64,000 nt of DNA. It comes from Macrostomum lignano. Taxonomy: Eukaryota. Below the pieces are notes generated by a model. It saw nothing but the letters and a program-made list of their open reading frames with translations. It did no database searches and had not been told where the DNA came from. A program made the position numbers and the translations under genes. Shown here piece after piece: positions 4,709 to 53,100 of this stretch (the first letter of the stretch is position 1; each line of letters begins with the position of its first letter). Location of the stretch: NCBI GenBank assembly GCA_002269645.1, contig NIVC01003172.1:1-64000 (forward strand). Reading direction: 5' to 3'.

Positions 4709-27379
<22,671 letters not shown>

Positions 27380-29398: not shown

Positions 29399-29404
29399 AG
29401 AGAG

Positions 29405-29495
<91 letters not shown>
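29399..29495. repeat. (GA)n microsatellite
   Basis: Direct reading. Confidence 0.95.
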
Positions 29496-29498
<3 letters not shown>

Positions 29499-29650
29499 GC
29501 GAGGGTAGAAAACGAGGGTAAGAGAGGATAGATAGATGGGATGAGAACGTAGATTTCTGGAGAGCTGCTTTCTCTAGAATTCTATGGAATAGAAAAGGAA
29601 ACGAGAGAAACGGAGCTGTTCAGGTGCGGGCACAAAGCTCCTCGCGGTCA

Positions 29651-30571
29651 CTATTTGATGAACATCTGCGTTGAGCTGACTGTGGAGCAGTCGTTTCGAT
29701 TCGAGATGACGCAGTCCGTTCCGTTGTAGATGAAGGACAGACAGGCGCTGTTCTGGGCGCACAGAACGGCGCACTCCAACAGGGCTTTCAATCCCGAAGT
29801 GGGCGTTTCCACCGCTGAGCAGCTGGCGCCAGTGATGGAAACCTTGTGAAACACCGTGTCTGGAATGTGCCGGGGGGGTCTGCTGGTCTCAATAGATTCT
29901 GTCTCTTGTGTTTCACTTGAATTGAAGGCTATGGAGTTTGATTACCGAAATAGGCAGATTGGTTAAAGAGATCGGCAGATTGGTTGCTAAGATCGGCAGA
30001 TTAGTTGCTAAGATCGGCAGATTGGTTGCTAATATCGGCAGATTGGTCATCGAGATTGGCAGATTAGGTATAGAGATCGGAAGATTGGTCATCGAGATTG
30101 GCAGATTGGTTGCTAAGATTGGCAGATTAGGTATAGAGATCGGCAGATTGGTCATCGAGATTGGCAGATTAGGTATAGAGATCGGCAGATTGGTCATCGA
30201 GATTGGCAGATTGGTTGCTAAGATTGGCAGATTAGGTATAGAGATCGGCAGATTGGTCATCGAGATTGGCAGATTAGGTATAGAGATCGGCAGATTGGTC
30301 ATCGAGATTGGCAGATTGGTTGCTAAGATTGGCAGATTATGTATAGAGATCGGCAGATTGGTTGCAATGAAAGTATGATGATCACATAACGATTTCGATG
30401 ATTTAGAATTTCCAAGTGCTATGCAAAATTCAGCAGATAAGGTACATGTTAAAAGTACAAAAGTGCATGAAAAGACTCGCTTGAACTGGCGGATTGAACT
30501 TTCAGTACGCAGAAGCTGGCGATGAAGTACAGGGCCAGCAAGACGGGTGTGATTGAGACAGGCCTCTCCAT
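29651..30571 (-). CDS. Small secreted PAN/Apple-domain protein, two exons
   Basis: Exon 1 starts at ATG 30571 and encodes a signal-peptide-like MERPVSITPVLLALYFIASFCVLKVQS; the donor is probably near 30459 (weak GTACTT). Exon 2 (about 29877-29651) encodes LLECAVLCAQNSACLSFIYNGTDCVIS, a PAN Cys pattern. The intron holds a 21-bp minisatellite. Confidence 0.6.
29944..30364. repeat. 21-bp minisatellite, about 20 copies
   Basis: Unit GAGATTGGCAGATTGGTCATC and variants. Confidence 0.92.
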
Positions 30572-33500
30572 ACCGCTTCGGTTGCTGTGCTTGTAAGCTT
30601 TGTGCTCTGCGAGGCAATTGCAATAATTCTGCTTCTGCAGCAATTTGTAGCGAGTATAGATATACTCAACAATCGCCTCGCCCCCGGCGTATTGATCGCT
30701 TGCAGTTTCACTTCGGGGGGAGGTGGTTGGGATGCCGTATCCATAACAACGAGAGAGCTGTTTTGCTGCTCATAATCCCCCTGCTTTTAAACTCCTCCCG
30801 CCTTTTCCATTAGAAGGCTTGGAATCACTTGGAACCAACCACCTCCTCCATCCCAGATGGCGCAATTGTTTCTGCTCAGCGCTCTGGCTTCAAGAAGCAG
30901 CCAAGCGATTAGCTGAGAGCATTGTTGTAAAAAACGACTTTGATTCAAGAGCTCTGCGCTTTTTTCTGAAAAAAAATTCCGCCAAAACAATGAAGCCTTG
31001 CTTAGGGATTTAACAATTAAAGCGTCGTGAGTGGTGCGTGAGCAATGGTAGATTGCCTAGTCGCGCACAGTGTCTATGGCCATTGTTTAACTCTGCAAAA
31101 CACTTACTCTAGCGCATTGTCGCTGAGACCGGCATGTCATTGTTTATCACTTTTATATTGTCATTTTTAACACTTTGAATCAGTTTGCGCGAGCCCGCGA
31201 AGGCTTACCGCCCTTAGTGCAAGAAGGGGGGCTGTCTGGGTGTTGACTGTCTTGTGGGGTGGTGGGTGCGTTGTACTCGCCGTGTTTGCCCTGATCAACG
31301 TTAGATAACAAAACAGCATGGCACCAATTCCACCTCATATATTGGAAAAGGGAGTACGACGTTTGCTTGCGGGAAGTTTGCTTGCCGAACTTTGCTTGCG
31401 GAATTTTGATGTCTGCTTCCTAGAAATTCCGAAATTCGCAATCACAATTGCAAGGTTTTAATTTACCGAATTATTTTCTTGTCTGCTTGCTTGTTTTGAG
31501 TGCTTGTGAAGTTGGTCAGTCAATTATTACTTACTACAGATGCTTTGCAAGTGGATTCTTATCAGCATCGATGTAAACTGACTTGACACTAAGCTTTCAA
31601 ACTAGGCTTATAGAGTTTCATTCTAAGTATGAAATGACTATTCGATGTGTGCATTGTTCGAAATTGTGTCCAATTTTTGTTGAAAATGTATTCCCAGTAA
31701 AAAACTAAATTATTCCATTTCCGCATTAGGGCTTTTCAAATCTGCCATATCCTCATACAAAATCATAACACTATAGGCGACTTCCACGAATCTTAGAAAA
31801 TGGAAATTGGAAATACAAGACCTCAAAAATAGGTCATTTAAGGTTCCGCAAGAAATTAGTGACCAGCCCCCACGAATGCAGAAGACAGCAAATTGGCCAA
31901 GCGAGAGCGAAAGCAAAGCGGAGCGCACAAAGCGAAGCGGCCTCCGACGAACTATTTACGAGCGTATATTGTTATAAAAGGAGACAAGTGCAAGGAGACA
32001 AGACAATTTAAAAGGAGATAAATTGGAAATTAAAATTAAATGTCAACGCGTAAGAAAAAAAATTATAGCAAATCATAACAGTGAGCGCACCGCTGAAACA
32101 GCGTGCTAAATAGCCAGCGGAGGCCGGGGAGGGGCTAAGTACAGCCCGCCCCACACAGATGCACAAAGGCAGGGGGTGGCTGATCACTAAAGCTGGTTTG
32201 CACAAGTTGCGAGCACCAATGCAAATCATTGCAACTGTGGCTGGCAAACCTCGGCAAGCAAATTTCATAGACCCAAAACTATATACTACAAATTTCATAG
32301 CCCATACATCATCCAGGAATGTATCAAGCTAAGGACTACTAGGAACACTTCGTTATAGTCTAGTCTAGTAGTCCTTGCAGAATGTATTTGCACTTAATGT
32401 AACCCTGCCTTCACCTAGTATAGGACCAATCAAGTAGCTACGTGTTAGGTATTGAAATTGTATTAATTCAGTAAAATTATAGGTCTGCTTTGATCAACAG
32501 TTTGGAGTTGCTTCGTGCACACAAACTTTTACAAATTAAATTTAACTAAATTAAACTAATTTGATAATATGAGCATCTAGATTACGTTTATCAGTCTGCG
32601 TTGAGGTTTTTGGTCTGCATCATGCGTCTTTGTTGATCGTGTCAAGCCATATATAATAGCTTGAATTCCGATACATGCATGCAAGGAGATAGTTAAACAC
32701 TGCATTTGCATAACTCGTGTAGGTTTCGAGCTATGTAGCTAATTTTTACTCGCTAACGCATCTCACATCGTACAGTTTAGAGTCTGGACGTTCTAAATTT
32801 GTAAGCTAGCATATGGACTTATAAGCCTTCAGATATAAAATTTTGGATAAATTGGTCGTACAGAATATAGCTATCTGAACGTTAATATTTTCTATAGTTA
32901 CTTTTAAATGTTTGCAGTCTACCAAATTTAATTACACTTTAATAATGCCAATACAGAAGTTGCAGAGCCTTTGTTATAACTCTAATGTTATTGTGATTTG
33001 AACAATTTTAAATTTGTGAGACATTTGTGAGACATACTAGCTAGATACACGAAGATACTAGACATGCGAGAAAGTAAATTTAGCTAGCCTTTAATTAAGA
33101 ATTTGATAAATAATATACACCCTTAAGAGGCTAAGCATAGCGCGCTGTCTACGTCTTGTCAAATGGGCTGTTTGCTAGACCTAGTGATGTCAAACTGAGT
33201 CTTCAATGGTCAACCGACAACCTGCCAGGCCCTAGACTTATAAACTATCAACATCACCTCCATCATATTAAATCACGTATCCCACTCTGCTTGGTCATGC
33301 CAATAGCTAACTGATTTACCTGTCCAGTGTCCTACAAATTAAGTTGACTCAAGTTATGCCTAAATTTAGGCCCCTTCTGGCTACCCTAATCTGTCAAGTA
33401 AAACGGGGTATGATATGATGGGCCTATCAATCAGTTACATCTGCCTAGGTGGTTAAACTATGCGAAATTTAATATAATCTTGTCGAGGTTTAATAAATAG

Positions 33501-34090
33501 GCCTTACTAGACCTTAGATAGGGCCAGGCCTACTAGATCTAAGCTAGATTATAAAAAAATAACTAGCCCCCCCTAGTTTACTAGCCTAGCATGCATACTA
33601 TATAGCAGTGCATAGGTTCAACTGATTTTGAATCAAATGTTACAAGCACTGATATTTGCATAATGATTTATGAAGTTTTAAGCCTGTAAGTACATTTTCT
33701 ATGCTTTATTTATTAAATTTATAGTAGGCCTTAACTGAAAGTAAGTGTTATGAATATGATTAATTATCAATAAATTATTAGGCCTGCTAATTACTAATAT
33801 ATTAGGCATAAATAAAAAATATATATATATAAGCTTATATTCAAGTTGTTCAAATAACATATATTTGAACAACTTTTGAACAACTTTGAACAACTATACC
33901 TTAGGCATAAGGTAAAATAAAATAGTAATGATAATTTTGTTGTAATGTCTAAAATATAATAAGTATTGAATTTCAACTAGTTTCATTTGAAAAAAAACAC
34001 CTTGACAGAGTTTTGGTTTCTCTAAAGTGATTAATATTGTAGTAGTGCTTCAATACAGTACAAATTTTGAACAATAAAGGTATGTTTTCT

Positions 34091-34840
34091 CCATACTCAG
34101 GAAGGTGGCCTACACGCGGGAATTTTCCCGCGTGCACAAGCCACGCTAAAATTTTGGCGTGCAAAATTGGCATGTAAATAGGGGTCTCAAGCCACGCCTA
34201 AATTTTCAGCGTACAAGTTTTTTACTTGGCGTGTAACCTTGGCGTGCAATTACAAACTGACAGTATATCAACAAGTCAGATATAGATGTATACACTATAT
34301 ATATACAATATATAAAGTTAAATGTGAACAATTGAATTTGAATGGTGATTAAACCAACTAGTTGAGGCTACAGCCTAGCCTACAGCCAGGCCTACACTCT
34401 ACAGCCTACATTAAAGTTAAAATATCCAATAACTTTTAAATGCTCTTATTTTGTGACTCTTGTAGACTTTTAGTTTATTTGTTTCTTAAAATGTGAAGAA
34501 AAAGTTTTTGATACTTACTATGTTCTTTGTAGGGAATTTCCTTTTTTATATAAACTTTGTTTAACATAAATAGAAAATTTATTTAAAAATAGTATCTAAT
34601 ACGGTTAATATTCAAATTTTTACAATTTACTGTAGGGTAAACAGACAGTGTAACCACTTTTGGCATATAGGATTTTGGTATACACAATTTTCGGCGTATA
34701 TGATTTTTGGTATTTAAGATTTTTGGCGTGCAACAAAAACGTCATGTTAAGGGTTTTAAAAAATTGGCGTACATTGGCTTGCACCAAGGATTTTTCTATA
34801 AATTGATTCCCGCGTGCACTTGCCACCTTCCTGACTATGG
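34091..34840. mobile_element. Non-autonomous DNA transposon (750 bp) with 8-bp TSD (hAT- or P-like)
   Basis: TIRs CCATACTCAGGAAGGTGGC.. and ..GCCACCTTCCTGACTATGG. Identical flanks TGTTTTCT at 34083-34090 and 34841-34848. Repeated TTGGCGT subterminal motifs. Confidence 0.88.
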
Positions 34841-36481
34841 TGTTTTCTTAGAAACCAAACTCGTGCGAAATACAAGATAAATATTTTGTTTTAATGCACC
34901 GAATGTATTTGTTTTATTTGTTGTATCAAATAATTTTGTTTTACTGCGCAAAATAAATTGGGGAATTATTTTTTGTTTTAATCATATGGGGGGGAAACCA
35001 CTATATATAGGAGCAATTTTCTAGTAAATATACTCAACTGTCTTACCGTCTCTGACTTGTGAGCAAATTCTTGCAAACAAAAATAAGCAGTTCAATCTAA
35101 AACTTTCAAAGTCTTTCCAGTTAAAATAGTGACTTATTCATTTGCAAAGTCTGAGGCACGATTCCAGGAGATTTGCTAAGAAAAGGGAATCAGGGAACAA
35201 TTCACAGAAGTATTACGAGAGAGAGACGCCGTGACCCTCTAGTCTTGGTAAATGCCCGATTAGGACTATTCACTAATACATATACCAGTACTAGACTGCT
35301 CAGGCCATAAGCTACCAGAACGCTACCAGAAAGCAAGCCATAAGCTACCAGAAAGCAAGCCATAAGCTACCAGAACGCTACCAGAAATGCTAATATGAAC
35401 GCTACCCAGAAATATTTAAATGAAATTCTAAGAAACAGTTAAGGAGTAAAAACAGAAGTGCAATCAGGATAACTTTAGTTAAGCAGACGGGAACAACACC
35501 TGTACAACTTTGGTGGCAGCTCTTAGGGTAATAAATTCTAGCATCAATAGTTAGGAGTTTAGAAAGACAGAGCCAGAAGGCCTGTCACAATATCTATATG
35601 ATAATGTTCTAATCATAGTATACCCTTTCAGCAATGAAAAACTAAAAAATCAAAGCTTGCACTAAGTTGAAGTTTCTTGTAAAACAGTTGGAAGCTAGCC
35701 AAAATCATTGATAATTTGAAGAAGGTCTATAGGGACACTGCTCCATAAGATTGAACCATTTACTACTAGATTCAGGCTTTTAAAAATGACTATTAGTTTA
35801 CATGTAAAGTGTGGTATATAAAGTGTACTTGCTCCTTTTCAAATGTTCAATTCAATTCAAACAGTGCAAAAAAGTTTTTTCTAAATTTACAAACAATATT
35901 TTTCTGAAGCATATATACCCAACCTCAAAATTTTATCCATCTGGTGCAACTTAGTTTTGTCCAGATTTGCAATTTAGTTCTTCCCAATTGCAACTTAGTT
36001 CCTCCAATTGCAACTTAATTTTCATTTTGTATATGACTTCCCTTTTTCTATTTTTTTTCTCTGTTTCTTTTCTCTTTCCCCCCTCTCTCTTCTCCTTCCT
36101 TTCTTCCAATTTTTTATTTTTTGCATTTTTAATTTTGCAACTTACCTTGGCCAATGGCCATTTTACCTGTCTAGTTCAGATGGGTCAGATGGGTGTTAGG
36201 CATTTATGTACTAAAAAATTAAAATATTACAACACAATTGTTATTTATTAATATTAAATTAAAAAATCAAAATTTAAAATAAGTTTCTTAGCATGCACAG
36301 CACTTTTTTACTTGGCACACAGTGTACAATTAAAAATTTGACTAGGGATTTGTTGCGGCACACATAGCCATAGAACTGACCATAGAATACCCACTGAGTC
36401 CTATGGCTATTATGGCCTGAACATTGGGTTTAATGCACTTAGTGTGCTATCAACCTGCTAAACTGCTTGAATACTGATTCA

Positions 36482-36736
36482 GAAAACTTTTATTAGCGCT
36501 TAGTGACTAGGGATGAAACATGGATATTTTAGTACAATCCCAAGTCTAAGGTCGAATCCAAGGAGTGGCTGCCACAAAGTTCAGTGGGCCCCAAGAAGTT
36601 TTATGTAGAAGGGTTTGCAGCAAAAGACTTGGTGACCATCTTCTATGATGTTGAGGGAGTGGTAATAGTGGACTTCTTAGAAAGCCAGATAACCATTAAT
36701 GCCATCTAATATGTGTTGCTTCTGCAAAAGTTCTAA
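36482..36736 (+). mobile_element. Degenerate mariner transposase fragment
   Basis: Translates as ENFY*RLVTRDETWIF*YNPKSKVESKEWLPQSSVGPKKF...KDLVTIFYDVEGVVIVDFLESQITINAI*YVLLLQKF, matching the mariner IVTGDETW...KVMxTVFWDxxGVIxxDFL pattern, with stops. Confidence 0.85.
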
Positions 36737-37005
36737 TTTTTTATAGATTTTTTGTAATATATTAGTATATTCCAGTGCTAGACAACATTCTGGCATTTCT
36801 AGCACTTTTAGTACTAGAAGTTTAAAGTGGCTCTTTTTTCTGGTTCTTTTTTTAGAATGCTAGACTTGGGTAATAGAAGTTACTTTTTGATAAGTCTGGT
36901 CCTCAGGTATTTAAAAATGAAATTTTAGGTGCCAAACAGCTAACTTAACAATAAATATTTCCCAAAAGTGCAAAACTTTTACCAAAATACTAGTATAATT
37001 ATACA

Positions 37006-37270
37006 CATACATGCGCAACCCCCCTGATTTACACTGGCCATGCAACTTACTTTTTGACCAAAAATGCAACTTACCTGTAAAAGAAACCCTAACGCAATTT
37101 TGGGTAAACGGCAGGAGTAACTATGACTGTCTTATAAGGTATAAATGCCTCGTCATCTAATTAGTACTATGTCTGTATTCTTCAGGCTGGGAATTTTTGC
37201 GATTACCCCTGGTCCACCACAATTTACGGTGGCCAGATTGGCCAGGTCGGCCAGCAGTTGCGCATGTATG
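37006..37270 (+). mobile_element. MITE carrying a 28S rRNA fragment (copy 1)
   Basis: 14-bp perfect TIR CATACATGCGCAAC/GTTGCGCATGTATG, 8-bp TSD ATTATACA (36998-37005 and 37271-37278), and an internal 28S-like segment at 37102-37165. Confidence 0.92.
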
Positions 37271-38230
37271 ATTATACAAAGAAAAAAAAGAGATGATCCT
37301 AGATTATATGGTTTTTACTTTTTAAGTTAAAGCATATTTTAAGTATTATGTACTGATAGAATCATAGAATCAAGTAATTATTGGTATTGGTAACTACTAA
37401 TACTGAAACAAGACACATTCAGAACAATAAACATCCTTGTTTAAAGTATGTTTAAAGTATAGCTGCTATAAAACTACAGCACAATACTAGTAGGATAACA
37501 AGAATGACCCAAACAAACTAAAGTCGCCTGAAGTATTCTACTCATTATGATACATCTATTGGACAAAAATTATCTTCATATAAACTTCTGAAGAGTCAGA
37601 AGCAACATTTGAAAATTGGCCACCCATTTTTTTGTAAAACCTAAGTGTAATTTCCTGATATTCTACTAATCTTTGTTTTGTAAAAGGTTTTGTTTATTCA
37701 CTCAAATTTTGGATGTAGTAATAATAAAAATATTTATGAGCAAGGTGCACAAGAGGCCCTTTAGGGATCTATTTCGAGCATATTTTGGAAATACACCTAT
37801 ATACATATTTATGCCACACATATACACCTTATGCACCTCTAATTTACCTTTCATGCACTTTCTGCATCCCTTTAGCACTTTTCTTTCACCTGCTGTGCCT
37901 CACTTGTGAGCCTACTGTTCACCTTTTGTGCACTTCCAGTGCCCCTTATGCACCTTTACTGCCCCTATCGCCGCAACCAATCAAAATTGAGAATTCACCT
38001 ACTGCCTAACCACTTCAATTTTACAATTGTCATGCCTCTTAAAAATATTGGTGACATTTAGGCATAAAAGGTATACTCAGGTGCATTTCCAAAGCACACA
38101 TGAAATACGCCACTAAAGTGCCTCTTTTGTGCACCTCACTTACCTTTTATGCATCTGCAGGTGCATAACTTTTCCAATGGGCCACAAAGTCATCCCCACA
38201 ATCAGCAGCCCTGATGATACAGTCTCTGTC

Positions 38231-38418
38231 CAGGGGTGTAGGGAGGGGGTTAAGGGGGATATACCCCCTCCCCCAAAGCCTGACCAAAACTTTTTTGTTG
38301 CCCTTTGTTGCTATACATGCTACCATGTCTGTCATAGTAGTTTTACCTTGGTGTATCCTCCCCATAGAAAATTCACCTTGGTGTATCCCCCCATAGAAAA
38401 TTCCTGGCTACGCTCCTG
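38231..38418. mobile_element. hAT-like MITE (188 bp)
   Basis: TIR CAGGGGTGTAG/CTACGCTCCTG; perfect 8-bp TSD TCTCTGTC (38223-38230 and 38419-38426). Confidence 0.88.
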
Positions 38419-39192
38419 TCTCTGTCACTGTTGCTTACAATAGCGCACTGCCAAGGCTGTTGTTCCATGATATCTTCATTGAATTCTGCTTCAAATTCAC
38501 TGATTCCATCTTCTTCCAGCAATTCATCGTCTTCTTTAATCTGATCTTCAGCATTCATATTGGTTCTTATTGCGCAATGATTATATAGTTATGCAGTACA
38601 GGAAAAACAAAAATTAGATTAATGTAATAAAAATGTATCTGATCTGCAAAAATCTCTGTCAAAATAGAATATAACTTTGTTTATTTTGAATTGAGTGTTT
38701 GAGTTGAAGTTCTGCTTGTTCCTTTTGAAGAAGACTTTGTTCAAAATTGGAGGTAAAATGGTGTATTAGTGCTAATAGAAAAGTGAAAATAGACCTATTA
38801 GATGCTAATTGGGCTTAACATCAATTCTTGATAAAAATTTCAAAAATTTGATATTGTTAAACTTTGAATTTTCCCTCAAAAACAACATCTTCAGGAGTAT
38901 GGCTAGGACCTAGTAATTGTTTAAAAATGGTTGTTATTTATTGGGATACTAGTTCCATAGGCTTTAAAATTTTTAGCTAAGGAAAATTGGTTTGAATCTA
39001 TTACTAGGCATTTTAATAATAAAATTTGATAGCATATTTTTATAGTATAAAACAAAGAATCAACTTTTGTTCTTTTATATGATATATTCTTTGTAAAGTA
39101 AGCTATTTTAATTTTAAGAAATATTGATTATTAATAAGAAAAAATATATTATATGTATATTTAAAATAGCAAGAAGATTAATAGTGTTAACA

Positions 39193-39322
39193 TATACATG
39201 CCCAACACCCAGCCAACCTGGCTTATTTGGCCAGGAGGCAAGAGGTCTGGCCAAGGTAAGTTGCAAAAATGCCAACTCAAAAATATAGACATAGTGCTAA
39301 TTAGATGACAAGACAAGGCATT
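39193..39322 (-). mobile_element. Truncated, inverted copy of the 28S-carrying MITE (copy 3)
   Basis: TIR-like TATACATGCCCAAC (12/14 match). The minus strand reads AATGCCTTGTCTTGTCATCTAATTAGCACTATGTCTA, homologous to the right half of copy 1. Confidence 0.75.
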
Positions 39323-39405
39323 GTTTCTTTTTATATCTGTACAAAACTTTTGATTCAAGTATTTCTTCTACTATATTATTCTACTTGTTCAAAATTGACT
39401 CACAG

Positions 39406-42400
39406 GTTCAACACCCCAGATAAGTTTGTTATTCAGCCGCACAATGGCCTGGAAACGCTTATTATTGACAGGCAGACAGGCGATATGTCAATCACTAGTA
39501 AGTAGACAGTATTTTTTACAAGCAAAATATTGATATGCCTAATTCACAAGCAATCAGTGCAGTGATGTCTTTCCGTGTTTCATCAGATGTGCGGATCAGC
39601 TGGTTTCCTGGCTCTCCTACAATTGATTGACATTAAATTTTTTGCTGAGCGCTGATTTACCAACTTTCTGTACTGTTTAACGAAATTAGGGGGTGTTTAC
39701 TAATTAACAGCAGTGCCAAATGATGTGTACATCCGTGTTTCATCCGATGGAGCAGCCTTTCATGGCTGCTCTGAGAATGATTTAAGTCCCCGATTAGAAT
39801 TCCCTATCTCTCTCAATAATCCCGATCTCTAATCCCGAGTTCCTTATCTCACTCTCGATAATCCCGATCTCTAATCCCGAGTTCCTTATCTCACTCTCGA
39901 TAATCCCGATCTCTAATCCCGAGTTCCTTATCTCACTCTCGATAATCCCGATCTCTAATCCCGAGTTCCTTATCTCACTCTCGATAATCCCGATCTCTAA
40001 TCCCGAGTTCCTTATCTCACTCTCGATAATCCCGATCTCTAATCCCGAGTTCCTTATCTCACTCTCGATAATCCCGATCTCTAATCCCGAGTTCCCTATC
40101 TGACTTCCAATAATCCCGATCTCTAATCCCTAATTCTCTATCTCACTCTCGATATTCCCGATCTCAATTTCGAATTCCATATCTCACAAAAGAAAGAAAG
40201 AAATGCAAAGATCAAGCAGCTAGCAATTTAGAATTTCCACTGCCGCTCATTCCTAATCCTAATCCAACAACCACTCGCCAACCCAGTGGACTCATCCGCT
40301 GTCTCCCGCCTCATCGTTGGTACACCACCGACGACAATCTACGGCCTGTGGGGCGTCCTGCAGCTGCTGTCTGGCCCTCACCTGTTGATAGTGCAGGCCC
40401 GTCGGCATGTCGGCAACCTGCGCGGTCACAGTCTGTGGCGTGTAGAGTCTGCGGACATTTTGCCGTATTGCCGATCTAGCCTGCATTTAACTGAGACTGC
40501 CGCGGCTGACAACGAGATTTACCTGCAGCTGGTTCGCGAGTCCCTGCGCACGCCAGGTTACTATTTCTCCTACACCACAGATCTCAGTCGCAGTCTTCAA
40601 AGCGCCTGTCGATACGCGGCGGAATCGGTTGACTACACGGCGACACCGGCGGCCGCTGCTGCTGTTGTTGATGCGACACCGTTGTGCGATCGAGCCGACG
40701 ATCGATTTGTATGGAATTATAATTCTCTGATCAAGCTGAGACGCTTTCCCAGATTTGCTCTGCCAGTTGTGCACGGCTTTGTCTGCGTCACGACTGTGCC
40801 GTTCAAGGTGAGGCCTTTCTAATCTCCAGGCATCGCAAAACAGCCTCTTGGCCAACTTTCGTGCACATACAAGTCCAAAATTAGTGTGGAATGGAACCAG
40901 AAGTTGTGGCGCGAGAGTCATACTGATCTGCTCTGCTCCCTTCCTCAGAAGGACCCTAGCATAGGTTCAGACAAACTTAGGACCGCTTTAGTAAGCCTAG
41001 TTTCGTAATTTTTTATTTCAAAAAAGATATTTCAATTGCATAATAATGATTTTAATCTTGCTACTGTTAGTAGCACTACTATTAAGCAAGTAAATTAACG
41101 GTATAATAAACCGAATCGCCGCCAGGGCCGGACCATAGACTACGCGCTGATTAGCCGGCGCTCCCGACACAGGGCCGGAGTCCGCTACTACACACGCGGC
41201 CTCGACGAGAATGGCTACGCGGCTAATTTTGTTGAAACTGAACAGATTCTGTCGGTGCCTTCGTCAGCTGGGACTAATCAAACAGCTAATCCGAATGCTC
41301 AGGCTCTGTTCAGCTTTGTCCAAACTCGCGGCTCAGTGCCATTAATCTGGTCTCAGTATCCAAATTTATTGTACAAGCCAGCGCCAACTATTAGTCAAGA
41401 TTGGGATAAACAGTTCGATGCGTTTGTTGCCCATTTTAGCGATCAGGTGAGCGCCTGTTTTGCTTGCCATCTGACAGTAGTTTGACTTAGGGGGGGGGGG
41501 CGGTGCCGCAATGATGTGATTATCCGTGTTTCATCCGATTGGAGCTGTCACTTTGACCTCCAATGATTGACATTTTTAATAACTGAGCACCTTGCAAAAA
41601 TATGGGAGATTTGTCGCTTAGTCTTATGCTATATATGAGGATAAATGTTCTTCTCTAGTTCTGATTCTCAATCCTAAGAATCCCAATTCTTAGTCCCTAA
41701 CACCGATTTTAAGAATCCCAATCATTTGTCCCCAATACCGATTCCAAGGATCCCAATCATGAGTCCCAAATACCGATTCCAAGAATCCCAATCATGAGTC
41801 CCAAATACCGATTCCAAGGATCCCAATCATGAGTCCCAAATACCGATTCCAAGGATCCCAATCATGAGTCCCAAATACCGATTCCAAGAATCCCAATCAT
41901 GAGTCCCAAATACCGATTCCAAGGATCCCAATCATGAGTCCCAAATACCGATTCCAAGAATCCCAATCATGAGTCCCAAATACCGATTCCAAGGATCCCA
42001 ATCATGAGTCCCAAATACCGATTCCAAGAATCCCAATCATGAGTCCCAAATACCGATTCCAAGGATCCCAATCATGAGTCCCAAATACCGATTCCAAGAA
42101 TCCCAATCATGAGTCCCAAATACCGATTCCAAGAATCCCAATCATGAGTCCCAAATACCGATTCCAGGAATCCCAATCATGGGTCCCAAATACCGATTCC
42201 AAGAATCCCAATCATGAGTCCCAAATACCGATTCCAAGGATCCCAATCATGAGTCCCAAATACCGATTCCAAGAATCCCAATCATGAGTCCCAAATACCG
42301 ATTCCAAGAATCCCAATCATGAGTCCCAAATACCGATTCCAAGAATCCCAATCATGAGTCCCAAATACCGATTCCAAGAATCCCAATCATGAGTCCCAAA

Positions 42401-45400
42401 TACCGATTCCAAGAATCCCAATCATGAGTCCCAAATACCGATTCCAAGAATCCCAATCATGAGTCCCAAATACCGATTCCAAGGATCCCAATTATGAGTC
42501 CCAAATACCGATTCCAAGAATCCCAATTATGAGTCCCAAATACCGATTCCAAGAATCCCAATTATGAGTCCCCAATACCGATTCCAAGAATCCCAATTAT
42601 GAGTCCCCAATACCGATTCCAAGAATCCCAATTATGAGTCCCAAATACCGATTCCAAGAATCCCAATCATGAGTCCCAAATACCGATTCCAAGAATCCCA
42701 ATTATGAGTCCCCAATACCGATTCCAAGAATCCCAATTATGAGTCCCAAATACCGATTCCAAGAATCCCAATTATGAGTCCCAAATACCGATTCCAAGAA
42801 TCCCAATTATGAGTCCCAAATACCGATTCCAAGGATCCCAATCATGAGTCCCAAATACCGATTCCAAGAATCCCAATTATGAGTCCCAAATACCGATTCC
42901 AAGAATCCCAATTATGAGTCCCAAATACCGATTCCAAGAATCCCAATCATGAGTCCCAAATACCGATTCCAAGAATCCCAATTATGAGTCCCAAATACCG
43001 ATTCCAAGAATCCCAATCATGAGTCCCAAATACCGATTCCAAGAATCCCAATCATGAGTCCCAAATACCGATTCCAAGAATCCCAATCATGAGTCCCAAA
43101 TACCGATTCCAAAGATCCTGTTCCTAATCCTTAGTCTCAGCCTAATCCTAATAACTCTTATCCCGTAATCTATCTATAATCTAATATATAAGTCTAATCT
43201 ATAAAAGATAGATTAGGCCTGATATATAACTCAGCTGTCAGTCTTCCAATGATGTCAATCCGTGTTTCATCTGATTGCAACTACTATTAGCAATATGCTG
43301 CAAACTTATAATTTGCTGCTGATGGAGGCTGCGCAATGCAAAAATATTGTTATTTTTTGCTGACTAACAATATAAATATATTAGCCTAATTTCTTTCAGG
43401 TGTTCACCCGTTGCTATGGCAACCAGGTAATTGTCAATTTATTAGACGCCGTAGGCAAAGAACGCGAACTGTGCGCCCAGTTCAGCCGGATGTGCAGCCT
43501 GACAGAGGTGACTCGCCGTTTTGATGGTCTCCGCTACGAGCACTTCGACTTTCATCGCGAGTGCAGCCGATTGAGATGGGACCGGCTTAGTCTGCTGCTG
43601 GAGCGGACTGAGCCAGACTTTGACTCTATGGGATATTTCCAGGCCGCTCCTGATGGTGAGCAACCGGGATGTGCACTTGTGTTTCTTATTATCACAGAAA
43701 ATTTTTATATATGCTCAGCTATCTGATAGTTTATTGAAAACACTTTATATAATGCCACTTTTGGACAAGGCTCCCATTCCAAGAATCCCACATCCAATCT
43801 CAATTCCAAGAATCCCACAGTTCATCTCAATTCCAAGAATCCCACAGTTCATCTCAATACCAAAAATCCCACACCCCATCTCAATTCCAAGAATCCCACA
43901 CCCCATCCCAGTTCCAAAAATCCCACATCCCATCTTAATTCCAAAAATCCCACATCCCATCTTAATTCCAAGAATCCCACACCCTATCTCAATTCCAAGA
44001 ATCCCACACCCTATCTCAATTCCAAGAATCCCACACCATATCTCAATTCCAAGAATCCCACACCCCATCTCAATTCCAAGAATCCCACACCCCATCCTAA
44101 TTCCAAGAATCCCACACCCCATCTCAATTTCAAGAATCCCACACCCCATCCTAATTCCAAGAATCCCACACCCCATCTCAATTTCAAGAATCCCACATCC
44201 CTAGCTAAATCCCTCTGACCACGTCATCCACAAAACTGCCTTTACTGCCTTCAGTGTATTTCTAGTCCATGTACATCTTCGTGTACGGTACATTACTGGT
44301 TGCGTTTGCGCCAATAGCAGGTTGTTGACATCTGGAGGTCGGTCTTCAAGTGCCATTCTTTCAATAAAATAGCCTACACATTGTTTCTTGCTACTGAACT
44401 GACAGGACCAATCAAAGATGCCGAATCATACATGCGCAACCTCCAAAATTCGGTCGGCCTTGCGACTTAGTTTTAACAAAAATGCGACGAAGTTTTTGGC
44501 CAAAAATGCGACTTACATGTAAAAAAACAACGAAAAATTAACGCAACTTTGGGTAAACGGCAAGAGTAACTATGACTGTCTTATTAAGTCAAAATGCCTC
44601 GTCAGCTACTTAGTACTAATACTACGTAGTGGGCGTTTTCGGGTGGGCATTTTTGCGACTTCCTTGGTTGGCCGCCAAATCGGTCGGCCGGATCGGCCGA
44701 CTCGGCCGACTGTTGCGCATGTATGTGCCGAATGGCCCATCTTATTAGTGTCTGTGGCGCAGAATAAGTGCTGAACTAAAGTAATAATACTAAACATGGA
44801 AACCAAAAAACATAAATTGTATTTGGATAAGTTTTCAACGATTTTGGTTCAGAAAACCTCCCCAAATGACAGCGTTTAAAAAGAGCGTTGCAAAACAATG
44901 AGCAGAGATAAAGGCTTGTTTATGCTAACAAGAAACTTATTGCCTGCAGATTAGCTAATAATCATAAAGAGAAGCAGAAGAAAAAATGGCCATAAAGCAA
45001 TATGAAAGATGCGCGCCTGACAAAAACCTGAATATATAGGAAAGAGCAACTGGCCTAAAAAAACTGGCCTTTTATAACAAAGAAAGTGCGTGTTTAACAA
45101 AGAACTCGACTAAAAAAATTATGCTATTCGTAAAATATACAACTGTTTGTTATGCTGCAAGACTCGACAAGTTTTAGCAAGTGGGCCGTTGGTTCAATTG
45201 AGTCACCGCTGCATGCCTTCAGCACAGGAAATGAGTGACGTGGATTATTAAAGCTGGTTGCAACATTTGGTCCCAACGTGTGTTAAGCTGGCGCTCACCT
45301 GTTGGAGCAGGGCAGTCTTTCATCAAGCCAGCTGCAGGTTGCTCAGGTACGACTCCAGCCTGTTAATCTCATTTTTCAAAATTTCCTCTCGCTCGCGAAA

Positions 45401-48400
45401 TCCCATGTAGCGACTCAGGGCCTCCTCCTCGGCTGCCGCGGCGGCAGCGGCCCCGGTGAACCGGCGGTGCTGCGGACCCTGGCTGACGGAGCGCCGGCGG
45501 CCGCCACCTCCGCCCAGGTCCCCTGCGCCGGGCCAGTCTTGCTGAAGACTCCGGGCCAGGGACTCCACTATCGAGTTGCCTGCGGGGCGGGGGAGGTGCA
45601 GACTGCTAGCGGTGCTGGGGTCCCATGTCAGGTGGATCGGGAGGAATCTGCAGGCTGCATCTGGCGGTGCTGGGGCGCCATGTCAGGTGGATCGGGAGGA
45701 ATCTGCAGGCTGCATCTGGCAGTGCTAGGGCACCATGTCAGGTGGATCGGGAGGAATCTGCAGGCTGCATCTGGCAGTGCTAGGGCACCATGTCAGGTGG
45801 ATCGGGAGGAATCTGCAGGCTGCATCTGGCGGTGCTGGGGCGCCATGTCAGGTGGATCGGGAGGAATCTGCAGGCTGCATCTGGCAGTGCTGGGGCGCCA
45901 TGTCAGGTGGATCGGGAGGAATCTGCAGGCTGCATCTGGCGGTGCTGGGGCGCCATGTCAGGTGGATCAGGATCTGTTTACAGAACCAAAAAGACCAATA
46001 TTGAACGAAAACACGCGTCAGAACTCAGGCTCAGGTGTGAGTCATGACGAGCTCCTCACCCTGCTTCATGGCTCCATCTCCATCCTCTGGCCCAGTTCTC
46101 TGCAGGTCTCCGGGCCGGCCCTTGCCCAGCCCGTAGCGCTGGTTCAGGAAGTATAGGCTGGTGTTGTCAGGCGTCCACTGCCCGACCTTCAGCCTGACGG
46201 CCACCTCCTTCTCGTTGTAGTCCTTGCGCAGCTTGTAGTCGGGAAAGTGCTGCTCAATGATGCGATTGCACTTGTCTACGCTGAGCTCGCTCGGCCCCTT
46301 GATCTCGAAGATGCAGAATCGCATGGCCTGCGTGCCTCCGAGCTTTCTGGTGAGGATTTTGTTTTTAACGGCAAACACGCAGCTGGTGCGGTTGCAGGCG
46401 GCCTTGACGCGCGTGTCGCTGAACATCTTCAAGCTGGCGTCTGTGATCTGCAGCAGGTACTGCTTCTTGTAGCTTAGTCCGGCGTACATCTCTTGCAGTT
46501 GGTATTTGGACTTTTGTGCAAAAATAAAATAACTACGCTCGTTAAGAGTTCAGAGTTCTTGTCTGTTGCTAAAATTGCTTATTTGACTTGAAATTTTCGA
46601 TTATTCTGCTAGCTTACGCGACTTTTACCATAGACAATACTCGATCTAGCTTTTATCTGTGAGTCAGCAAAACAAGTACGAGATGTCTTTTATCGATGTG
46701 TTTTAGACAAATTATAGTTAATAACGATTTAAGCTTGGTGATCAGAGGGGGTTTAGTGGAGCTCAAAAAGAAAGATTCAAGCTCGTACTATTAATATTCA
46801 GAAAGAAAAGAATGTGAAGCGGATTCCCTATGGTTTGTTAGTTGAAAAGGACTTCCACAGGCGAGGTTCTGGCTCTGTGGTTTAGGTTTAGCTGACGAAG
46901 AGTGCTGAGTAGGAAGTCAGTAACCGGTCCTGGCCTATTGCGGGCACACTGCTCTTTTCAGTACACGCGCATTTAGAAATATTAAGCTGCGAGTTAACTT
47001 GTCGCTTTGACATTGCCATCCCCTCTCCTCCCTAGGCTCCCCGCAGCGCACCCAGCACTCGGTATTTCGCGTCAACTGCATCGACTGTCTAGACCGCACC
47101 AATGTTGCCCAGTGCCTGCTGGCTAGGCGCGCCCTTGCCCGTCAGCTGGCCGATCTTGGCTATGCCGCTCTGTTTGCTAACAACGCTACTAGCAGTAATA
47201 GTAGCGAATCCAAAACCGATCCGGACGCGGAGTCTCTAGAATCGGTCATCAAGCTTGCCTGGTCGGACAATGCCGACGAATTGTCTTTGCAGTACGCCGG
47301 CACCGGCGCTTTGAAGGCAGATTTCACTCGGACTGGCCGGCGCACCAAATCCGGCGCCCTGCGCGACGCCTATTTTAGCGCAGTACGCTACGCCAGGAAT
47401 AATTTCTACGACGGCTGGCGACAGGACGCTATAGATTTGTTGCTGGGCAATTACCTGCCGGAGCGAGGCGAGTTGAGTCCGTTTGCTCAGGGTCGCGATT
47501 GGAAAGTCTGGCTGTTGCCGTCAGTGCTGCTGTTTGGATTAACTATGCTCACTATGGGCGCTCTGCTGCCGCCAGGTGAGCTGTTAGTTGCTCTACTATT
47601 AAGGCCCATTCTAAACCTGATGGGATTTGAGGGGTTGTCAGACCCGCTGAGGGGATTTGAGGGGTTGTCAGACCCGCTGAGGGGATTTGAGGAATTGTCA
47701 GACCCGCTGAGGGGATTTGAGGGGTTGTCAGACCCGCTGAGGGGATTTGAAGGGTTGTCAGACCCGCTAAGGGAATTTAAGGGGTTGTTAGACTCGCTAA
47801 GGGGATTTGAGGGGTTGTCAGACCCGCTGATGGGATTTGAGGGATTGTCAAACCCGCTGAGGGGATTTGAGGGGTTGTCAGACCCGCTGAGGGAATTTGA
47901 GGGGTTGTCAGACCCGCTGATGGATTTGAGGGATTGTCAAACCCGCTGAGGGGATTTGAGGGGTTGTCAGACCCGCTGAGGGAATTTGAGGGGTTGTCAG
48001 ACCCGCTGATGGGATTTGAGGGGTTGTCAGACCCGCTGATGGGATTTAAGGGGTTGTCAGACCCGCTGATGGGATTTGAGGGATTGTCACACCCGCTGAT
48101 GGGATTTGAGGGGTTGTCAGACCCGCTGATGGGATTTGAGGGGTTGTCAGACCCGCTGAGGGGATTTGAGGGGTTGTCAGACCCGCTGATGGGATTTGAG
48201 GGGTTGTCAGACCCGCTGATGGGATTTGAGGGGTTGTCAGACCCGCTGATGGGATTTGAGGGGTTGTCAGACCAGCTGATAGGATTTGAGGGGTTGTCAG
48301 ACCCGCTGATGGGATTTGAGGGGTTGTCAGACCAGCTGATAGGATTTGAGGGGTTGTCAGACCCGCTGATGGGATTTGGGGGTTTGTCAGACCCGCTGAT

Positions 48401-49065
48401 GGGATTTGGGGGTTTGTCAGACCCGCTGATGGAATTCGAGAGGTTGTCAGACCCGCTGAGGGGATTTGAGGGGTTGTCAGACCCGCTGAGGGGATTTGAG
48501 GGGTTGTTAAAGCCGCTGAGGGGATTTGAGGGGTTGTAAAACCCGCTGAGGGGATTTAAGGGGTTGTCAGACCCGCTGAGGGGATTTGAGGGGTTGTAAA
48601 AGCCGCTGAGGGGATTTGAGGGGTTGTCAGACCCTCTGATGGGATTTGAGGAATTGTCAGACCCGCTGAGGGGATTTGAGGGGTTGTCAGACCCTCTGAT
48701 GGGATTTGAGGGATTGTCAGACCCGCTAAGGGGATTTGAGGGGTTGTCAGACCCGCTGATGGGGATTTGAGGGGTTGTCAGACCCGCTGACGGGGATTTG
48801 AGGGGTTGTCAGACCCGCTGACGGGGATTTGAGGGGTTGTTCAGACTCGCTGAGTGGGTTTGAGGATATCAGCCACATGGACACAGCAAAGCTAGCTTAA
48901 TTCCCTAACGTTGCAGAGCACTGGTCGGAGCAGATGTTATTCTCGCTATTCTGGTGCACATCTGTGGTGTTGGCAATATTCGGCATTTTCTACTACGGCG
49001 AAGACTTCGTTGACCGGCCCCGATTGGGCCAGAAATTCAGTCGCCAAAAACGATCAACTGTTTGA
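39406..49065 (+). CDS. SAC1: Phosphatidylinositol-4-phosphate phosphatase SAC1 (first exon upstream, not firmly located)
   Basis: Exons 39406-39497, 40287-40807, 41126-41446, 43400-43655, 47036-47575, 48917-49065, all GT-AG with compatible phases. Motifs: [47 protein letters not shown], catalytic [12 protein letters not shown] (CX5RT), [18 protein letters not shown], two C-terminal TM segments and [14 protein letters not shown] at about 49198. Confidence 0.93.
39553..39656 (+). ncRNA. Box C/D snoRNA, guide antisense to 28S rRNA UGAAACACGGA (copy 1)
   Basis: Terminal stem ATCAGTGC/GCGCTGAT, C box GTGATGT (39562), guide TCCGTGTTTCA (39572-39582), D' CAGA, C' TGATTGA (39624), D box CTGA (39645). 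Intronic in SAC1. Confidence 0.85.
39710..39785 (+). ncRNA. Box C/D snoRNA copy 2, apparently 3'-truncated
   Basis: C box ATGATGT (39720), same guide (39732-39742), D' CCGA and internal hairpin GAGCAGCC/GGCTGCTC. No D box plus terminal stem is seen before the 42-bp satellite. Confidence 0.65.
39800..40165. repeat. 42-bp minisatellite, about 8 copies
   Basis: Unit TCCTTATCTCACTCTCGATAATCCCGATCTCTAATCCCGAGT. Confidence 0.92.
41502..41591 (+). ncRNA. Box C/D snoRNA copy 3
   Basis: Stem GGTGC/GCACC, C box ATGATGT (41511), guide (41523-41533), D' CCGA, hairpin TTGGAG..GTCA/TGAC..CTCCAA, C' TGATTGA (41564), D box CTGA (41583). Confidence 0.87.
41700..43115. repeat. 35-bp minisatellite, about 40 copies
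   Basis: Unit CCAAATACCGATTCCAAGAATCCCAATCATGAGTC. Confidence 0.96.
43239..43331 (+). ncRNA. Box C/D snoRNA copy 4
   Basis: Stem CAGTCTTCCA/TGGAGGCTG, C box ATGATGT (43249), guide (43259-43269), canonical D' CTGA (43271), D box CTGA (43319). It ends about 70 nt before the acceptor at 43399, the typical intronic snoRNA position. Confidence 0.87.
43775..44200. repeat. 27-bp minisatellite, about 15 copies
   Basis: Unit ATTCCAAGAATCCCACACCCCATCTCA. Confidence 0.92.
44427..44725 (+). mobile_element. MITE carrying a 28S rRNA fragment (copy 2)
   Basis: Same 14-bp TIR, 8-bp TSD TGCCGAAT (44419-44426 and 44726-44733), and a 28S-like segment at 44551-44614. Confidence 0.92.
45323..46489 (-). CDS. 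Uncharacterised protein of about 228 aa, two exons, nested antisense in a SAC1 intron
   Basis: Exon 46489(ATG)-46060 ends CAG G|GTGAGG. The acceptor CCCGCAG precedes exon 45579-45323. The phase-1 junction is in frame, codon usage is GC3-rich, and the C-terminus is coiled-coil-like ([22 protein letters not shown]). Confidence 0.7.
45610..45970. repeat. 55-bp minisatellite, about 6 copies
   Basis: Unit GTCAGGTGGATCGGGAGGAATCTGCAGGCTGCATCTGGCGGTGCTGGGGCGCCAT, in the intron of the nested gene. Confidence 0.92.
47617..48860. repeat. 30-bp minisatellite, about 41 copies
   Basis: Unit GGGATTTGAGGGGTTGTCAGACCCGCTGAG/T, in the last SAC1 intron. Confidence 0.96.
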
Positions 49066-50196: not shown

Positions 50197-53100
50197 CTAC
50201 TTGAGCAGTCCAGTCGACTTCCAGGCGTCTTCCATTCGCCAGACTCCGAATGCGTAGCCCAACCGGTCGCCGCCGCCGGCTCCGCTGGCCGCTGCAGCGG
50301 CCGCCGCGGCGGCGGCAGCCGCAGCCGTGGCAGCAGAAATCGGGCCGCAGCAGTCCATAGCCGATGCTGCAGTCGTCGGTCCGCCGAAGAAGCCCGGCTG
50401 GTGCTGATGATGATGAGCAGCTGCTGACAGATGATGGAACTGCTGATGGTAGTGATACGGGTGCTGGTGCTGGTACTGCTGGTCGTCCGCGTCCTCGCCG
50501 CAGCGCAGCACAGTGGACAAGAAGTCGATGTAGCGAGTGGCCAGTCGGAGAGTCTGGATTTTCGACAGTTTATCGGACGGCAGAGTCGGTATAATGCGCC
50601 TGAGCTCCTCGTACGCTCTGCGGGTTGGGGGAGAAAGTGTAGCAGATTTTGTGCTAAATTTGTCAATCGTTAAAATACGATAATCATAAGATTTTGCAGG
50701 ATCTTGTAGGATAATCTAATATCTTGCCGGATATTGTAGGATTATCAAATATCTTGCCGGATATTGTAGGTAGGATTATCAAATATCTTGCAGGATATTG
50801 TAGGATTATCAAATATCTTGCAGGATATTGTAGGATTATCAAATATCTTGCAGGATATTGTAGGTAGGATTATCAAATATCTTGCAGGATATTGTAGGAT
50901 TATCAAATATCTTTCCGGATATTGTAGGATTATCAAATATCTTGCCGGATATTGTAGGATTATCAAATATCTTGCCGGATATTGTAGGATTATCAAATAT
51001 CTTGCAGGATATTGTAGGATTATCAAATATCTTGCAGGATATTGTAGGTAGGATTATCAAATATCTTGCAGGATCTTGTAGGATTATCAAATATCTTGCA
51101 GGATATTGTAGGATTATCAAATATCTTGCCGGATATTGTAGGATTATCAAATATCTTGCAGGATATTGTAGGATTATCAAATATCTTGCAGGATATTGTA
51201 GGATTTTCAAATATCTTGCAGGATATTGTAGGATTATCAAATATCTTGCAGGATATTGTAGGATTATCAAATATCTTGCCGGATATTGTAGGATTATCAA
51301 ATATCTTGCAGGATATTGTAGGATTATCAAATATCTTGCAGGATATTGTAGGATTTTCAAATATCTTGCAGGATATTGTAGGATTATCAAATATCTTGCA
51401 GGATATTGTAGGATTATCAAATATCTTGCAGGATCTTGTAGGATTATCAAATATCTTGCAGGATATTGTAGGATTATCAAATATCTTGCCGGATATTGTA
51501 GGATTATCAAATATCTTGCAGGATATTGTAGGATTATCAAATATCTTGCAGGATATTGTAGGATTATCAAATATCTTGCAGGATCTTGTAGGATTATCAA
51601 ATATCTTGCAGGATATTGTAGGATTATCAAATATCTTGCCGGATATTGTAGGATTATCAAATATCTTGCAGGATATTGTAGGATTATCAAATATCTTGCA
51701 GGATATTGTAGGTAGGATTATCAAATATCTTGCAGGATATTGTAGGATTATCAAATATCTTGCAGGATATTGTAGGATTATCAAATATCTTGCCGGATAT
51801 TGTAGGATTATCAAATATGTTGCAGGATCTTGTAGGATTATCAAATATCTTGCAGGATATTGTAGGATTATCAAATATCTTGCAGGATATTGTAGGATTA
51901 TCAAATATCTTGCAGGATATTGTAGGTAGGATTATCAAATATCTTGCAGGATCTTGTAGGATTATCAAATATCTTGCAGGATATTGTAGGATTATCAAAT
52001 ATCTTGCAGGATATTGTAGGATTATCAAATATCTTGCAGGATATTGTAGGATTATCAAATATCTTGCAGGATATTGTAGGATTTTCAAATATCTTGCAGG
52101 ATATTGTAGGTAGGATTATCAAATATCTTGCAGGATATTGTAGGATTATCAAATATCTTGCAGGATATTGTAGGATTATCAAATACTCGTATCTTGCAGG
52201 ATATTGTAGGATTATCAAATATCTTGCAGGATATTGTAGGATTATCAAATATCTTGCAGGATATTGTAGGATTATCAAATATCTTGCAGGATATTGTAGG
52301 ATTTTCAAATATCTTGCAGGATATTGTAGGTAGGATTATCAAATATCTTGCAGGATATTGTAGGTAGGATTATCAAATATCTTGCAGGATATTGTAGGAT
52401 TATCAAATATCTTGCAGGATATTGTAGGATTATCAAATATCTTGCAGGATATTGTAGGATTTTCAAATATCTTGCAGGATATTGTAGGATTATCAAATAT
52501 CTTGCAGGATCTTGTAGGATTATCAAATCTTGCAGGATCTTGTAGGATTATCAAATCTTGCAGGATCTTGTAGGATTATCAAATATCTTGTAGGATTATC
52601 AAATATCTTGCAGGATATTGTAGGATTATCAAATATCGTTCTCGGGGCTCCTGTGGCCACCAGTTTGCAAACAGCCGATCGGCCGATGCAGGACGCGGGG
52701 TTGAAATGAACTCACTTGTTCAAGGACTGTGTCCTCTGCCGCTCCCGCACATTGGCCATCATCCTCGCGGAGCTGCCGCTGTCATCGTAGGCGTCAGACG
52801 CTGCCGAGTGCGACGCGGCGTCTGAGCAGCCGCTCCGCTTTCTTTTTCGGCTGCTGGAGGCGGCGTTGCCAGAGCCTTTGGCTTCCAGCTTCACGCACAA
52901 GCTTGAATCGGTTCCAGGCTCCGCCGTTGCCGGCATCAGGCCACGACTGTGTCGCTGGTTTGACTCCGTCTGGGCAAATTGGATTTGTGTTGAGCGAATG
53001 TCTTCGTGCAGGTATATGAAGTTGGCTGAGATTCTGAGGTGCGGGTCTCTTGGGTTGGCTGAGATTCTGAGGTGAGGGTCTCTTGGGTTGGCTGAGATTC

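Follow-up and report, generated by a model that had tools for sequence, protein, structure and literature searches.

Transposons of animals that are bounded by terminal inverted repeats (TIRs) capture fragments of host DNA, by what is thought to be template switching in the course of repair or replication, and occasionally amplify them (PMC8277862). In these Pack-TIRs, such as Pack-hAT-N8_XT of Xenopus tropicalis (Tan et al., 2021; PMC8277862), and in the Pack-MULEs of plants, a short piece of host sequence resides within the transposon and is carried to unlinked sites with distinct target-site duplications (TSDs). Among 370 Pack-TIRs from 100 animal genomes 4 were multicopy, and the captured piece has a median length of 224 bp (PMC8277862). 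For ribosomal DNA (rDNA), a 2024 review regards the modules present in transposable elements (TEs) as mostly neutral, non-beneficial products of reshuffling, and tabulates SINE28 for the 28S gene and Pokey/mPok for the intergenic spacer (IGS) (PMC10946416). SINE28, a mammalian short interspersed nuclear element (SINE), is a class I retroposon that lacks TIRs and is moved by long interspersed nuclear elements (Longo et al., 2015, as cited in PMC10946416). Pokey is a piggyBac DNA transposon of Daphnia that inserts into 28S with duplication of TTAA, has derivatives (mPok) that are miniature inverted-repeat TEs (MITEs), and carries IGS repeats as the rDNA-derived part of its interior (Elliott et al., 2013, as cited in PMC10946416). 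The Cassandra and Ajax terminal-repeat retrotransposons in miniature and the 5S-derived SINEs are non-autonomous elements with the 5S gene, which brings an internal RNA polymerase III promoter and is plausibly beneficial. Here we analyze a stretch of 64,000 nucleotides of the Macrostomum lignano genome (contig NIVC01003172.1, positions 1 to 64,000 of the forward strand; hereafter the window), which contains a family of small TIR-bounded elements with a 28S-like block at their center. We consider it probable that this is a non-coding, multicopy MITE or Pack-TIR family with a 28S rDNA passenger that was acquired once as filler.

The members examined, three full copies, one truncated copy and one relative, come from 110 kb, consisting of the 64-kb window and the 46-kb M. 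lignano locus NIVC01001485.1 (L001), the additional members having been found by BLASTN and with an nhmmer profile of the copies. Two of the full copies, c1 and c2, lie in the window (Table 1). Both start with the 14-mer CATACATGCGCAAC and end with its exact reverse complement, and the four exact matches to this 14-mer in the window are the ends of c1 and c2; with up to 2 mismatches, 5 matches were found where 0.40 would be expected. A perfect 8-bp TSD flanks each copy. The motif TGCRACTTA occurs 9 times in the window compared to 1.18 expected occurrences, with all 9 located within members of the MITE family, and is found in direct orientation in both arms. From end to end c1 and c2 are approximately 75% identical, the left arm of c1 being without one 22-bp unit.

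The longest open reading frames (ORFs) touching the elements are 49–66 amino acids, and those of 61 and 66 amino acids extend into the flanks. An exact look-up of the 49-amino acid ORF inside the MITE matched no record, and an exhaustive comparison of the 67-codon open frame of c2 with protein representatives gave only bacterial repeat proteins with a YLWSNGATTQ-like motif, a spurious match. No autonomous element with these ends was found in the window or in L001, a search that the first-pass annotation of the window had proposed. TIRs, TSDs of fixed length that are specific to each site, small size (265–299 bp) and dispersed copies are all features of a MITE, and c1 and c2 are non-autonomous, TIR-bounded, TSD-flanked DNA transposons that inserted independently. 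The same annotation, made from the sequence alone, had described two complete elements with perfect 14-bp TIRs, repeated subterminal motifs and different TSDs indicative of independent transposition, and all of this holds.

Table 1. Positions of the MITE family members and their parts (window coordinates, unless L001 is given).
Feature	Position	Strand	Remarks
Left TSD of c1, ATTATACA	36998..37005	.	Same 8-mer at 37271-37278
MITE copy c1, complete, 265 bp, subfamily A	37006..37270	+	nhmmer E=1.7e-82 vs family profile
Left TIR of c1, CATACATGCGCAAC	37006..37019	+	
Two subterminal TGCAACTTA motifs of c1 (37041-37049, 37065-37073)	37041..37073	+	Presumed transposase-binding repeats
28S rRNA-derived block of c1, helix 69-71 region, sense orientation	37102..37167	+	54/66 vs LSU consensus
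Right TIR of c1	37257..37270	-	
Right TSD of c1, ATTATACA	37271..37278	.	
Left TSD of c2, TGCCGAAT	44419..44426	.	Same 8-mer at 44726-44733
MITE copy c2, complete, 299 bp, subfamily B, CpG-rich (24 CpG)	44427..44725	+	nhmmer E=4.8e-98
Left TIR of c2, CATACATGCGCAAC	44427..44440	+	
Subterminal TGCGACTTA motifs of c2 (44461-44469, 44507-44515), inside tandem ~23-bp duplication	44461..44515	+	
28S rRNA-derived block of c2	44551..44616	+	52/66 vs LSU consensus
Right TIR of c2	44712..44725	-	
Right TSD of c2, TGCCGAAT	44726..44733	.	
Full copy in L001	L001 8533-8827	-	81% identical to c2; carries 28S block; own TSD AGACTATA
5'-truncated, decayed member	39194..39332	-	nhmmer E=5.2e-17, profile positions 159-294
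Diverged relative without 28S block	35910..36208	+	Two colinear nhmmer hits

The center of the full copies is occupied by a 66-nt block, assigned in the first-pass annotation to helices 69–71 of 28S ribosomal RNA (rRNA). In a cmscan search of 8.1 kb, c1 aligned to positions 2255–2310 of the Rfam large-subunit (LSU) model LSU_rRNA_eukarya (RF02543) with 23.8 bits (E = 0.017), a local match of 56 positions that remains below the gathering score of 50 and spans the helix-69 hairpin, the single-stranded TAAGGTAGCCAAATGCC stretch and helix 71. A cmscan of c2 alone gave no LSU hit, and the copy in L001 reached 9.8 bits. As cmscan on single copies is too insensitive for a decayed fragment, the sequences were compared with a real LSU reference. 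Searching with an exact 68-nt pattern from 28S yielded more than 120 contigs of eukaryotic rDNA, present as contaminants in prokaryotic assemblies, and the LSU consensus was built for a 388-nt region from 94 of these contigs, one of which scores 718.8 bits to the LSU model. The part of the LSU that corresponds to the block is nearly invariant among 69 distinct reference sequences.

Local alignment of the three full copies to the LSU region scored 51, 43.5, and 38, where shuffled sequences gave 10.5 ± 1.5. Without gaps, the block is 79–82% identical to the LSU consensus in c1 and c2 (Table 1), and 50 of its 66 positions agree in the L001 copy. The alignment can be extended by approximately 20 nt on the 5' side at lower identity; as this extension also resembles the element's own TGCAACTT motif, the left boundary of the block is uncertain. 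No part of the arms showed convincing further similarity to the LSU. Judged by these alignments, the central block derives from the helix 69–71 region of 28S and is a gene-derived fragment rather than a gene, as had been proposed. Chance resemblance to 28S was ruled out (z above 18). A real rRNA gene or rDNA unit was rejected, as the match does not reach the gathering score and two pairs in the helix-69 stem are non-standard; so were a junction of R2 or Pokey, since the colinearity of the block with 28S continues past the insertion sites, and a SINE or retroposed origin, given that TIRs and TSDs are present and a tail is lacking. As a side observation, the contigs with the exact 68-nt eukaryotic 28S string belong to species-representative assemblies of bacteria and archaea, which points to widespread eukaryotic rDNA contamination of prokaryotic genome records.

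The third full copy, in L001, confirms the existence of a further TIR-bounded copy with the core. Its ends, CATACATGCACAAC and CATACATACACAAT, match the TIR at 13/14 and 11/14 positions, and with its own duplication the three full copies show three different perfect 8-bp TSDs at unrelated sites (ATTATACA, TGCCGAAT, and AGACTATA). What remains of the truncated copy in the window is the 3' half of the block (AATGCCTTGTC..TCATCTAATTAG) together with the right arm, which has one TGCAACTTA motif, and a degenerate end, GTTGGGCATGTATA. The diverged relative, situated 0.8 kb upstream of c1, matches profile positions 1–88 and 219–294 (E = 0.016 and 0.023), has the ends CATATATACCCAAC and GTTAGGCATTTATG and four TGCAACTTA motifs, and is flanked by the 8-mers TTCTGAAG and TACTAAAA, which are identical at 5 of 8 positions; its middle is CT-rich and unrelated to 28S. 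As arms and ends are shared with this relative that lacks the block, the backbone is older than the block and independent of it, and the same ends and motifs in a core-less element indicate that the block is not required for mobility of the transposon lineage. Outside these loci, a MITE-specific 21-mer from the block, scanned against metagenomes, gave two matches, both by chance, and scans of viral contigs gave one chance match for the block pattern and none for a pattern of TIR plus motif.

Ten LSU-derived columns of the block are changed in all three full copies, and the common changes include GGCG to GGCA, CTCTC to CTGTC, GTGA to GTAC and a rearranged stretch at CTTAAGGTAGCC. Because these ten changes are shared, the fragment was captured once; the first-pass annotation had reached the same view from the CTGTC common to c1 and c2, which is present in the L001 copy as well. 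Since c2 is nearer to the L001 copy (81% identity) than to c1 in the same window (75%), the capture predates the split of the two subfamilies, and two subfamilies or more had the block by the time these copies arose. With the TIRs excluded, divergence in the block versus the rest of the element amounts to 0.11 versus 0.32 for c1 and c2, 0.17 versus 0.30 for c1 and the L001 copy, and 0.12 versus 0.19 for c2 and the L001 copy. When CpG-involved columns were removed, the last pair showed 0.10 in both parts, and the pairs with c1 still had 0.11–0.15 in the block versus 0.26–0.27 in the rest. Much of the excess divergence is located in the GGCC/CpG-rich right arm (the copies contain 24, 8, and 0 CpG in c2, c1, and L001, respectively), and CpG decay together with slippage in this arm explains part of the lower divergence of the block in the c1 pairs. 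We interpret these values as neutral decay of the block within a subfamily, with at most weak evidence that it changes more slowly between subfamilies.

Relative to c2, 32 of the 49 differences in the L001 copy are C>T or G>A. In AT-rich intergenic DNA (window 28000–40000; L001 1–10000), the observed/expected ratio is 0.48–0.61 for CpG and 1.35–1.48 for GpC. The loss of CpG seen in these sequences suggests CpG hypermutability, possibly with cytosine methylation, in Macrostomum.

The backbone of the transposon consists of the left end with the left arm and the right arm with the right end, and the core-less relative has this backbone around a different middle. The middle of this family is largely the ~66 nt of 28S (helices 69–71), possibly with ~20 more degenerate nucleotides on the 5' side. 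In the mechanism that we propose, a single capture of rDNA would have taken place while an internally deleted, broken or excised element was under repair, either by abortive gap repair or by template switching at a replication fork, and transposition of the resulting chimera would afterward have produced a multicopy Pack-TIR. Mobilization would occur in trans by a transposase encoded elsewhere, none being seen in the window or L001, which would be expected to recognize the 14-bp TIR and the subterminal TGCRACTTA repeats and to generate 8-bp TSDs. Deletion derivatives of P, Ac/Ds, and hobo that contain filler DNA resemble the elements described here, in that ends and subterminal repeats are kept and the interior is replaced, as a result of abortive gap repair. 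On the basis of its sequence, the 28S fragment is most likely a decaying pseudo-fragment, a passenger without function.

Several points weigh against this explanation. The reference for the block is a pan-eukaryote LSU consensus in place of the 28S of M. lignano itself, and the few copies from 110 kb do not fix a family consensus or the share of copies that bear the block. The block is less diverged than the rest in the comparisons with c1 (Fisher p = 0.0008–0.015), so that some constraint in the master copies could have acted on it. No clean junction microhomology can be defined, the 5' boundary being fuzzy, and 11/14 positions of the right TIR recur in the 28S sequence that immediately follows the captured piece on its 3' side, which a simple filler model does not predict.

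A capture by an autonomous parent, for example in a non-coding part, followed by inheritance of the piece in the MITE through internal deletion, would also explain why both subfamilies and the L001 copy have one block with an identical set of derived changes. Pokey offers a precedent, as an autonomous DNA transposon with rDNA-derived (IGS) repeats (PMC10946416). However, neither locus contains an autonomous element with these ends, and the core-less relative demonstrates that the backbone exists without the block; we therefore regard this course of events as unlikely. It also seems improbable to us that the block is more than a passenger, be it a segment retained for a function (binding of an R2-type protein or nucleolar factor, or small RNAs) or the record of a birth of the family in rDNA via the cryptic end GACGCGCATGAATG. 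If true, either would tie a cut-and-paste transposon family mechanistically to the rDNA.

For a birth within an rDNA unit, one genuine end of an element located in the 28S gene or close to it and the cryptic 28S end GACGCGCATGAATG would have been used by a transposase and have mobilized the intervening 28S sequence, with right arm and TIR restored later. The best match to the 14-bp TIR in the 388-nt LSU region is indeed GACGCGCATGAATG, with 11/14 positions identical to the right TIR GTTGCGCATGTATG, its first position coincides with the 3' boundary of the captured segment, and it is oriented like a right end. Shuffled TIRs reach 11/14 in 2.2% of cases for the whole region and in 0.06% for the interval from -5 to +10 nt of the boundary. 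The terminal 48 nt of c1 also align weakly to this LSU stretch (score 11.5, reached by 4% of shuffles), but this alignment is not seen in c2 or the L001 copy. In all copies, moreover, the block lies ~90–100 bp away from the right TIR, the right arm occurs in the core-less relative as well and is hence ancestral rather than a later addition, and the observation of a TIR-like 28S sequence was made post hoc. The neighbor GACGCGCATGAATG may reflect chance or be a trace of homology-guided template switching; a birth from a cryptic end is less likely, and we hold it to be quite improbable.

The proposal that the block acts as a decoy or landing pad for R2, Pokey or I-PpoI, or as a source of small RNAs, is not supported by its present state. 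Both the I-PpoI 15-mer CTCTCTTAAGGTAGC and the R2 cleavage decamer TAAGGTAGCC (TAAGG^TAGCC) are absent from c1, c2, the L001 copy and the truncated copy, the region around the cleavage point being the most altered part of the block. The TTAA of Pokey is kept in c2 and the L001 copy only and lost in c1, and the two changes in the helix-69 stem are both uncompensated. The four copies that bear the core are all free of insertions by other elements. The predicted RNA or DNA fold is stabilized by pairing of the TIRs and by GC-rich local palindromes of the right arm; the block has no antisense partner within the element and is thus not spanned by any long hairpin. Of the R2 recognition region, the upstream part, GGGTAAACGGC.GGAGTAACTATGAC, which we take to have a role in R2 binding, is nearly intact. 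A functional module under selection, acting as a decoy or landing pad (for R2 or Pokey-like elements), a site for nucleolar or ribosomal factors or a source of small RNAs, would fit with this near-intact part, with the presence of the block in both subfamilies at both loci and with its being the best-conserved internal part in the c1 comparisons, but is very unlikely in view of the lost cleavage sites and TTAA, the broken helix-69 pairing, the equal rates of block and arms within subfamily B (CpG-free comparison of c2 and the L001 copy), the lack of foreign insertions and of a long hairpin, and a truncated copy and core-less relative showing that the lineage can do without it. In sum, the structural interpretation given in the first-pass annotation is right, and its functional speculation is not supported.

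The superfamily of the MITE was considered as well. Elements of the hAT superfamily have the terminus YARNG and the TSD consensus nTnnnnAn. The initial suggestion of hAT or P, based on the TSDs, stands for the TSD length of 8 bp, but the terminus CATAC does not fit YARNG, and T at position 2 and A at position 7 of the TSD are each found in 1/3 (a small sample). The P superfamily is characterized by a TSD of 7–8 bp, a short TIR, THAP-type binding sites in subterminal position and a P/THAP9-like transposase; in the MITE, an 8-bp TSD and subterminal repeats are present, and no transposase was found in the window or L001. The reverse complement of the subterminal motif, TAAGTYGCA, is in our assumption comparable to the THAP site of the P element (TAAGTG). 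P and hAT elements also have 8-bp TSDs, and a hAT-like or P-like assignment is only a guess from this TSD length, which fits a few others too.

Like a Pack-TIR, the MITE has a host-derived block between TIR arms, the parental rDNA being recognized here through the universal LSU consensus. Its captured piece of 66 nt is shorter than the Pack-TIR median, the parental sequence is the 28S rRNA gene instead of an untranslated region or exon of a protein gene, and the family is old, with two subfamilies, and present in the window and L001. SINE28 is likewise a dispersed repeat with a piece of 28S, and presumably derives from another part of that gene; the elements described here are class II cut-and-paste MITEs with TIRs and 8-bp TSDs. 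With Pokey and mPok the family shares that it is a DNA transposon with MITE forms and an rDNA-derived interior, and the natural target of Pokey, TTAA in CTCTTAAGG, falls within the 28S stretch captured here. Unlike in Pokey, the TSDs are 8 bp long and unrelated in sequence, and none of the insertions seen is in rDNA. In comparison to Cassandra, Ajax, and the 5S-derived SINEs, the rRNA-gene sequence is a decaying piece of 28S with no known promoter function. In agreement with the first-pass annotation, which knew of no 28S-carrying MITE, the review table lists neither a DNA transposon nor a MITE with 28S (PMC10946416), and our search of the literature, as distinct from Repbase and Dfam, found no description of this family or of any 28S-carrying MITE.

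The window also carries a gene for a chromatin remodeler of the CHD6-9 type, with an SNF2 exon (18931–20166) and a 1727-codon exon (20639–25822) with HTH_CHD6-9 and BRK domains, as well as a divergent M13 peptidase ORF. The protein encoded by the SNF2 exon is 93% identical to M. lignano A0A1I8G5A8/PAA67398.1, the next best hits being at most 70% identical. Searches with the M13 peptidase ORF and with the ORF 26093–27379 gave no match, and none of the proteins of the window has an exact counterpart among recorded proteins. L001 aligns to the window in exons only, with 76–89% nucleotide identity, and the two versions of the CHD gene have a Kimura two-parameter (K2P) distance of 0.57 at 139 four-fold degenerate sites; from these alignments, the two may be divergent paralogous regions of M. 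lignano. The K2P distance between the MITE copies of the window and that of L001 is 0.20–0.31, versus this 0.57 in the adjacent gene, a difference that could come from a paralogous gene comparison, from master copies that evolve slowly or from a transfer between lineages. The SNF2 exon is an uninterrupted 411-codon ORF in the window and is split in L001 (25456–25912, 28692–29454) by an intron of ~2.8 kb, which was thus gained or lost between the two. Window 180–285 matches L001 30476–30578, in an intron of the CHD gene of L001, over 107 bp (82%), which is either another shared repeat or a conserved non-coding piece.

A second interspersed repeat of ~290 bp, 77–81% identical between window 37454–37740 and L001 140–422, is located 180 bp downstream of c1. 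Its similarity extends to all reading frames, so it is non-coding, and by its sequence it probably represents a further TE family. Long minisatellite arrays crowd the intergenic DNA that surrounds the MITEs (window 28634–55139; e.g., 41676–43112, 47617–48865, 50679–52637, and 54029–55139), with periods of 25–55 bp, up to 64 copies and 91–97% identity, and c2 is located between two of these arrays. Long microsatellites of the (CTGT)n/(ACAG)n type occur upstream of and within the CHD gene region (9219–9450 and 20195–20540), in opposite orientation and ~10.7 kb apart.

The family is a fairly ordinary case of a transposon that captured host sequence, and opens no new mechanism. If confirmed genome-wide, it would add a DNA transposon to the short list of TEs with large-subunit rDNA sequence, and would represent an old and amplified member of the rare multicopy Pack-TIRs of animals (4 of 370; PMC8277862). 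Copies of this kind yield spurious, dispersed "LSU-rRNA" hits in the annotation of repeats and rRNA in flatworms, and could confuse read-based analyses of rDNA copy number or of R2 targets in Macrostomum.

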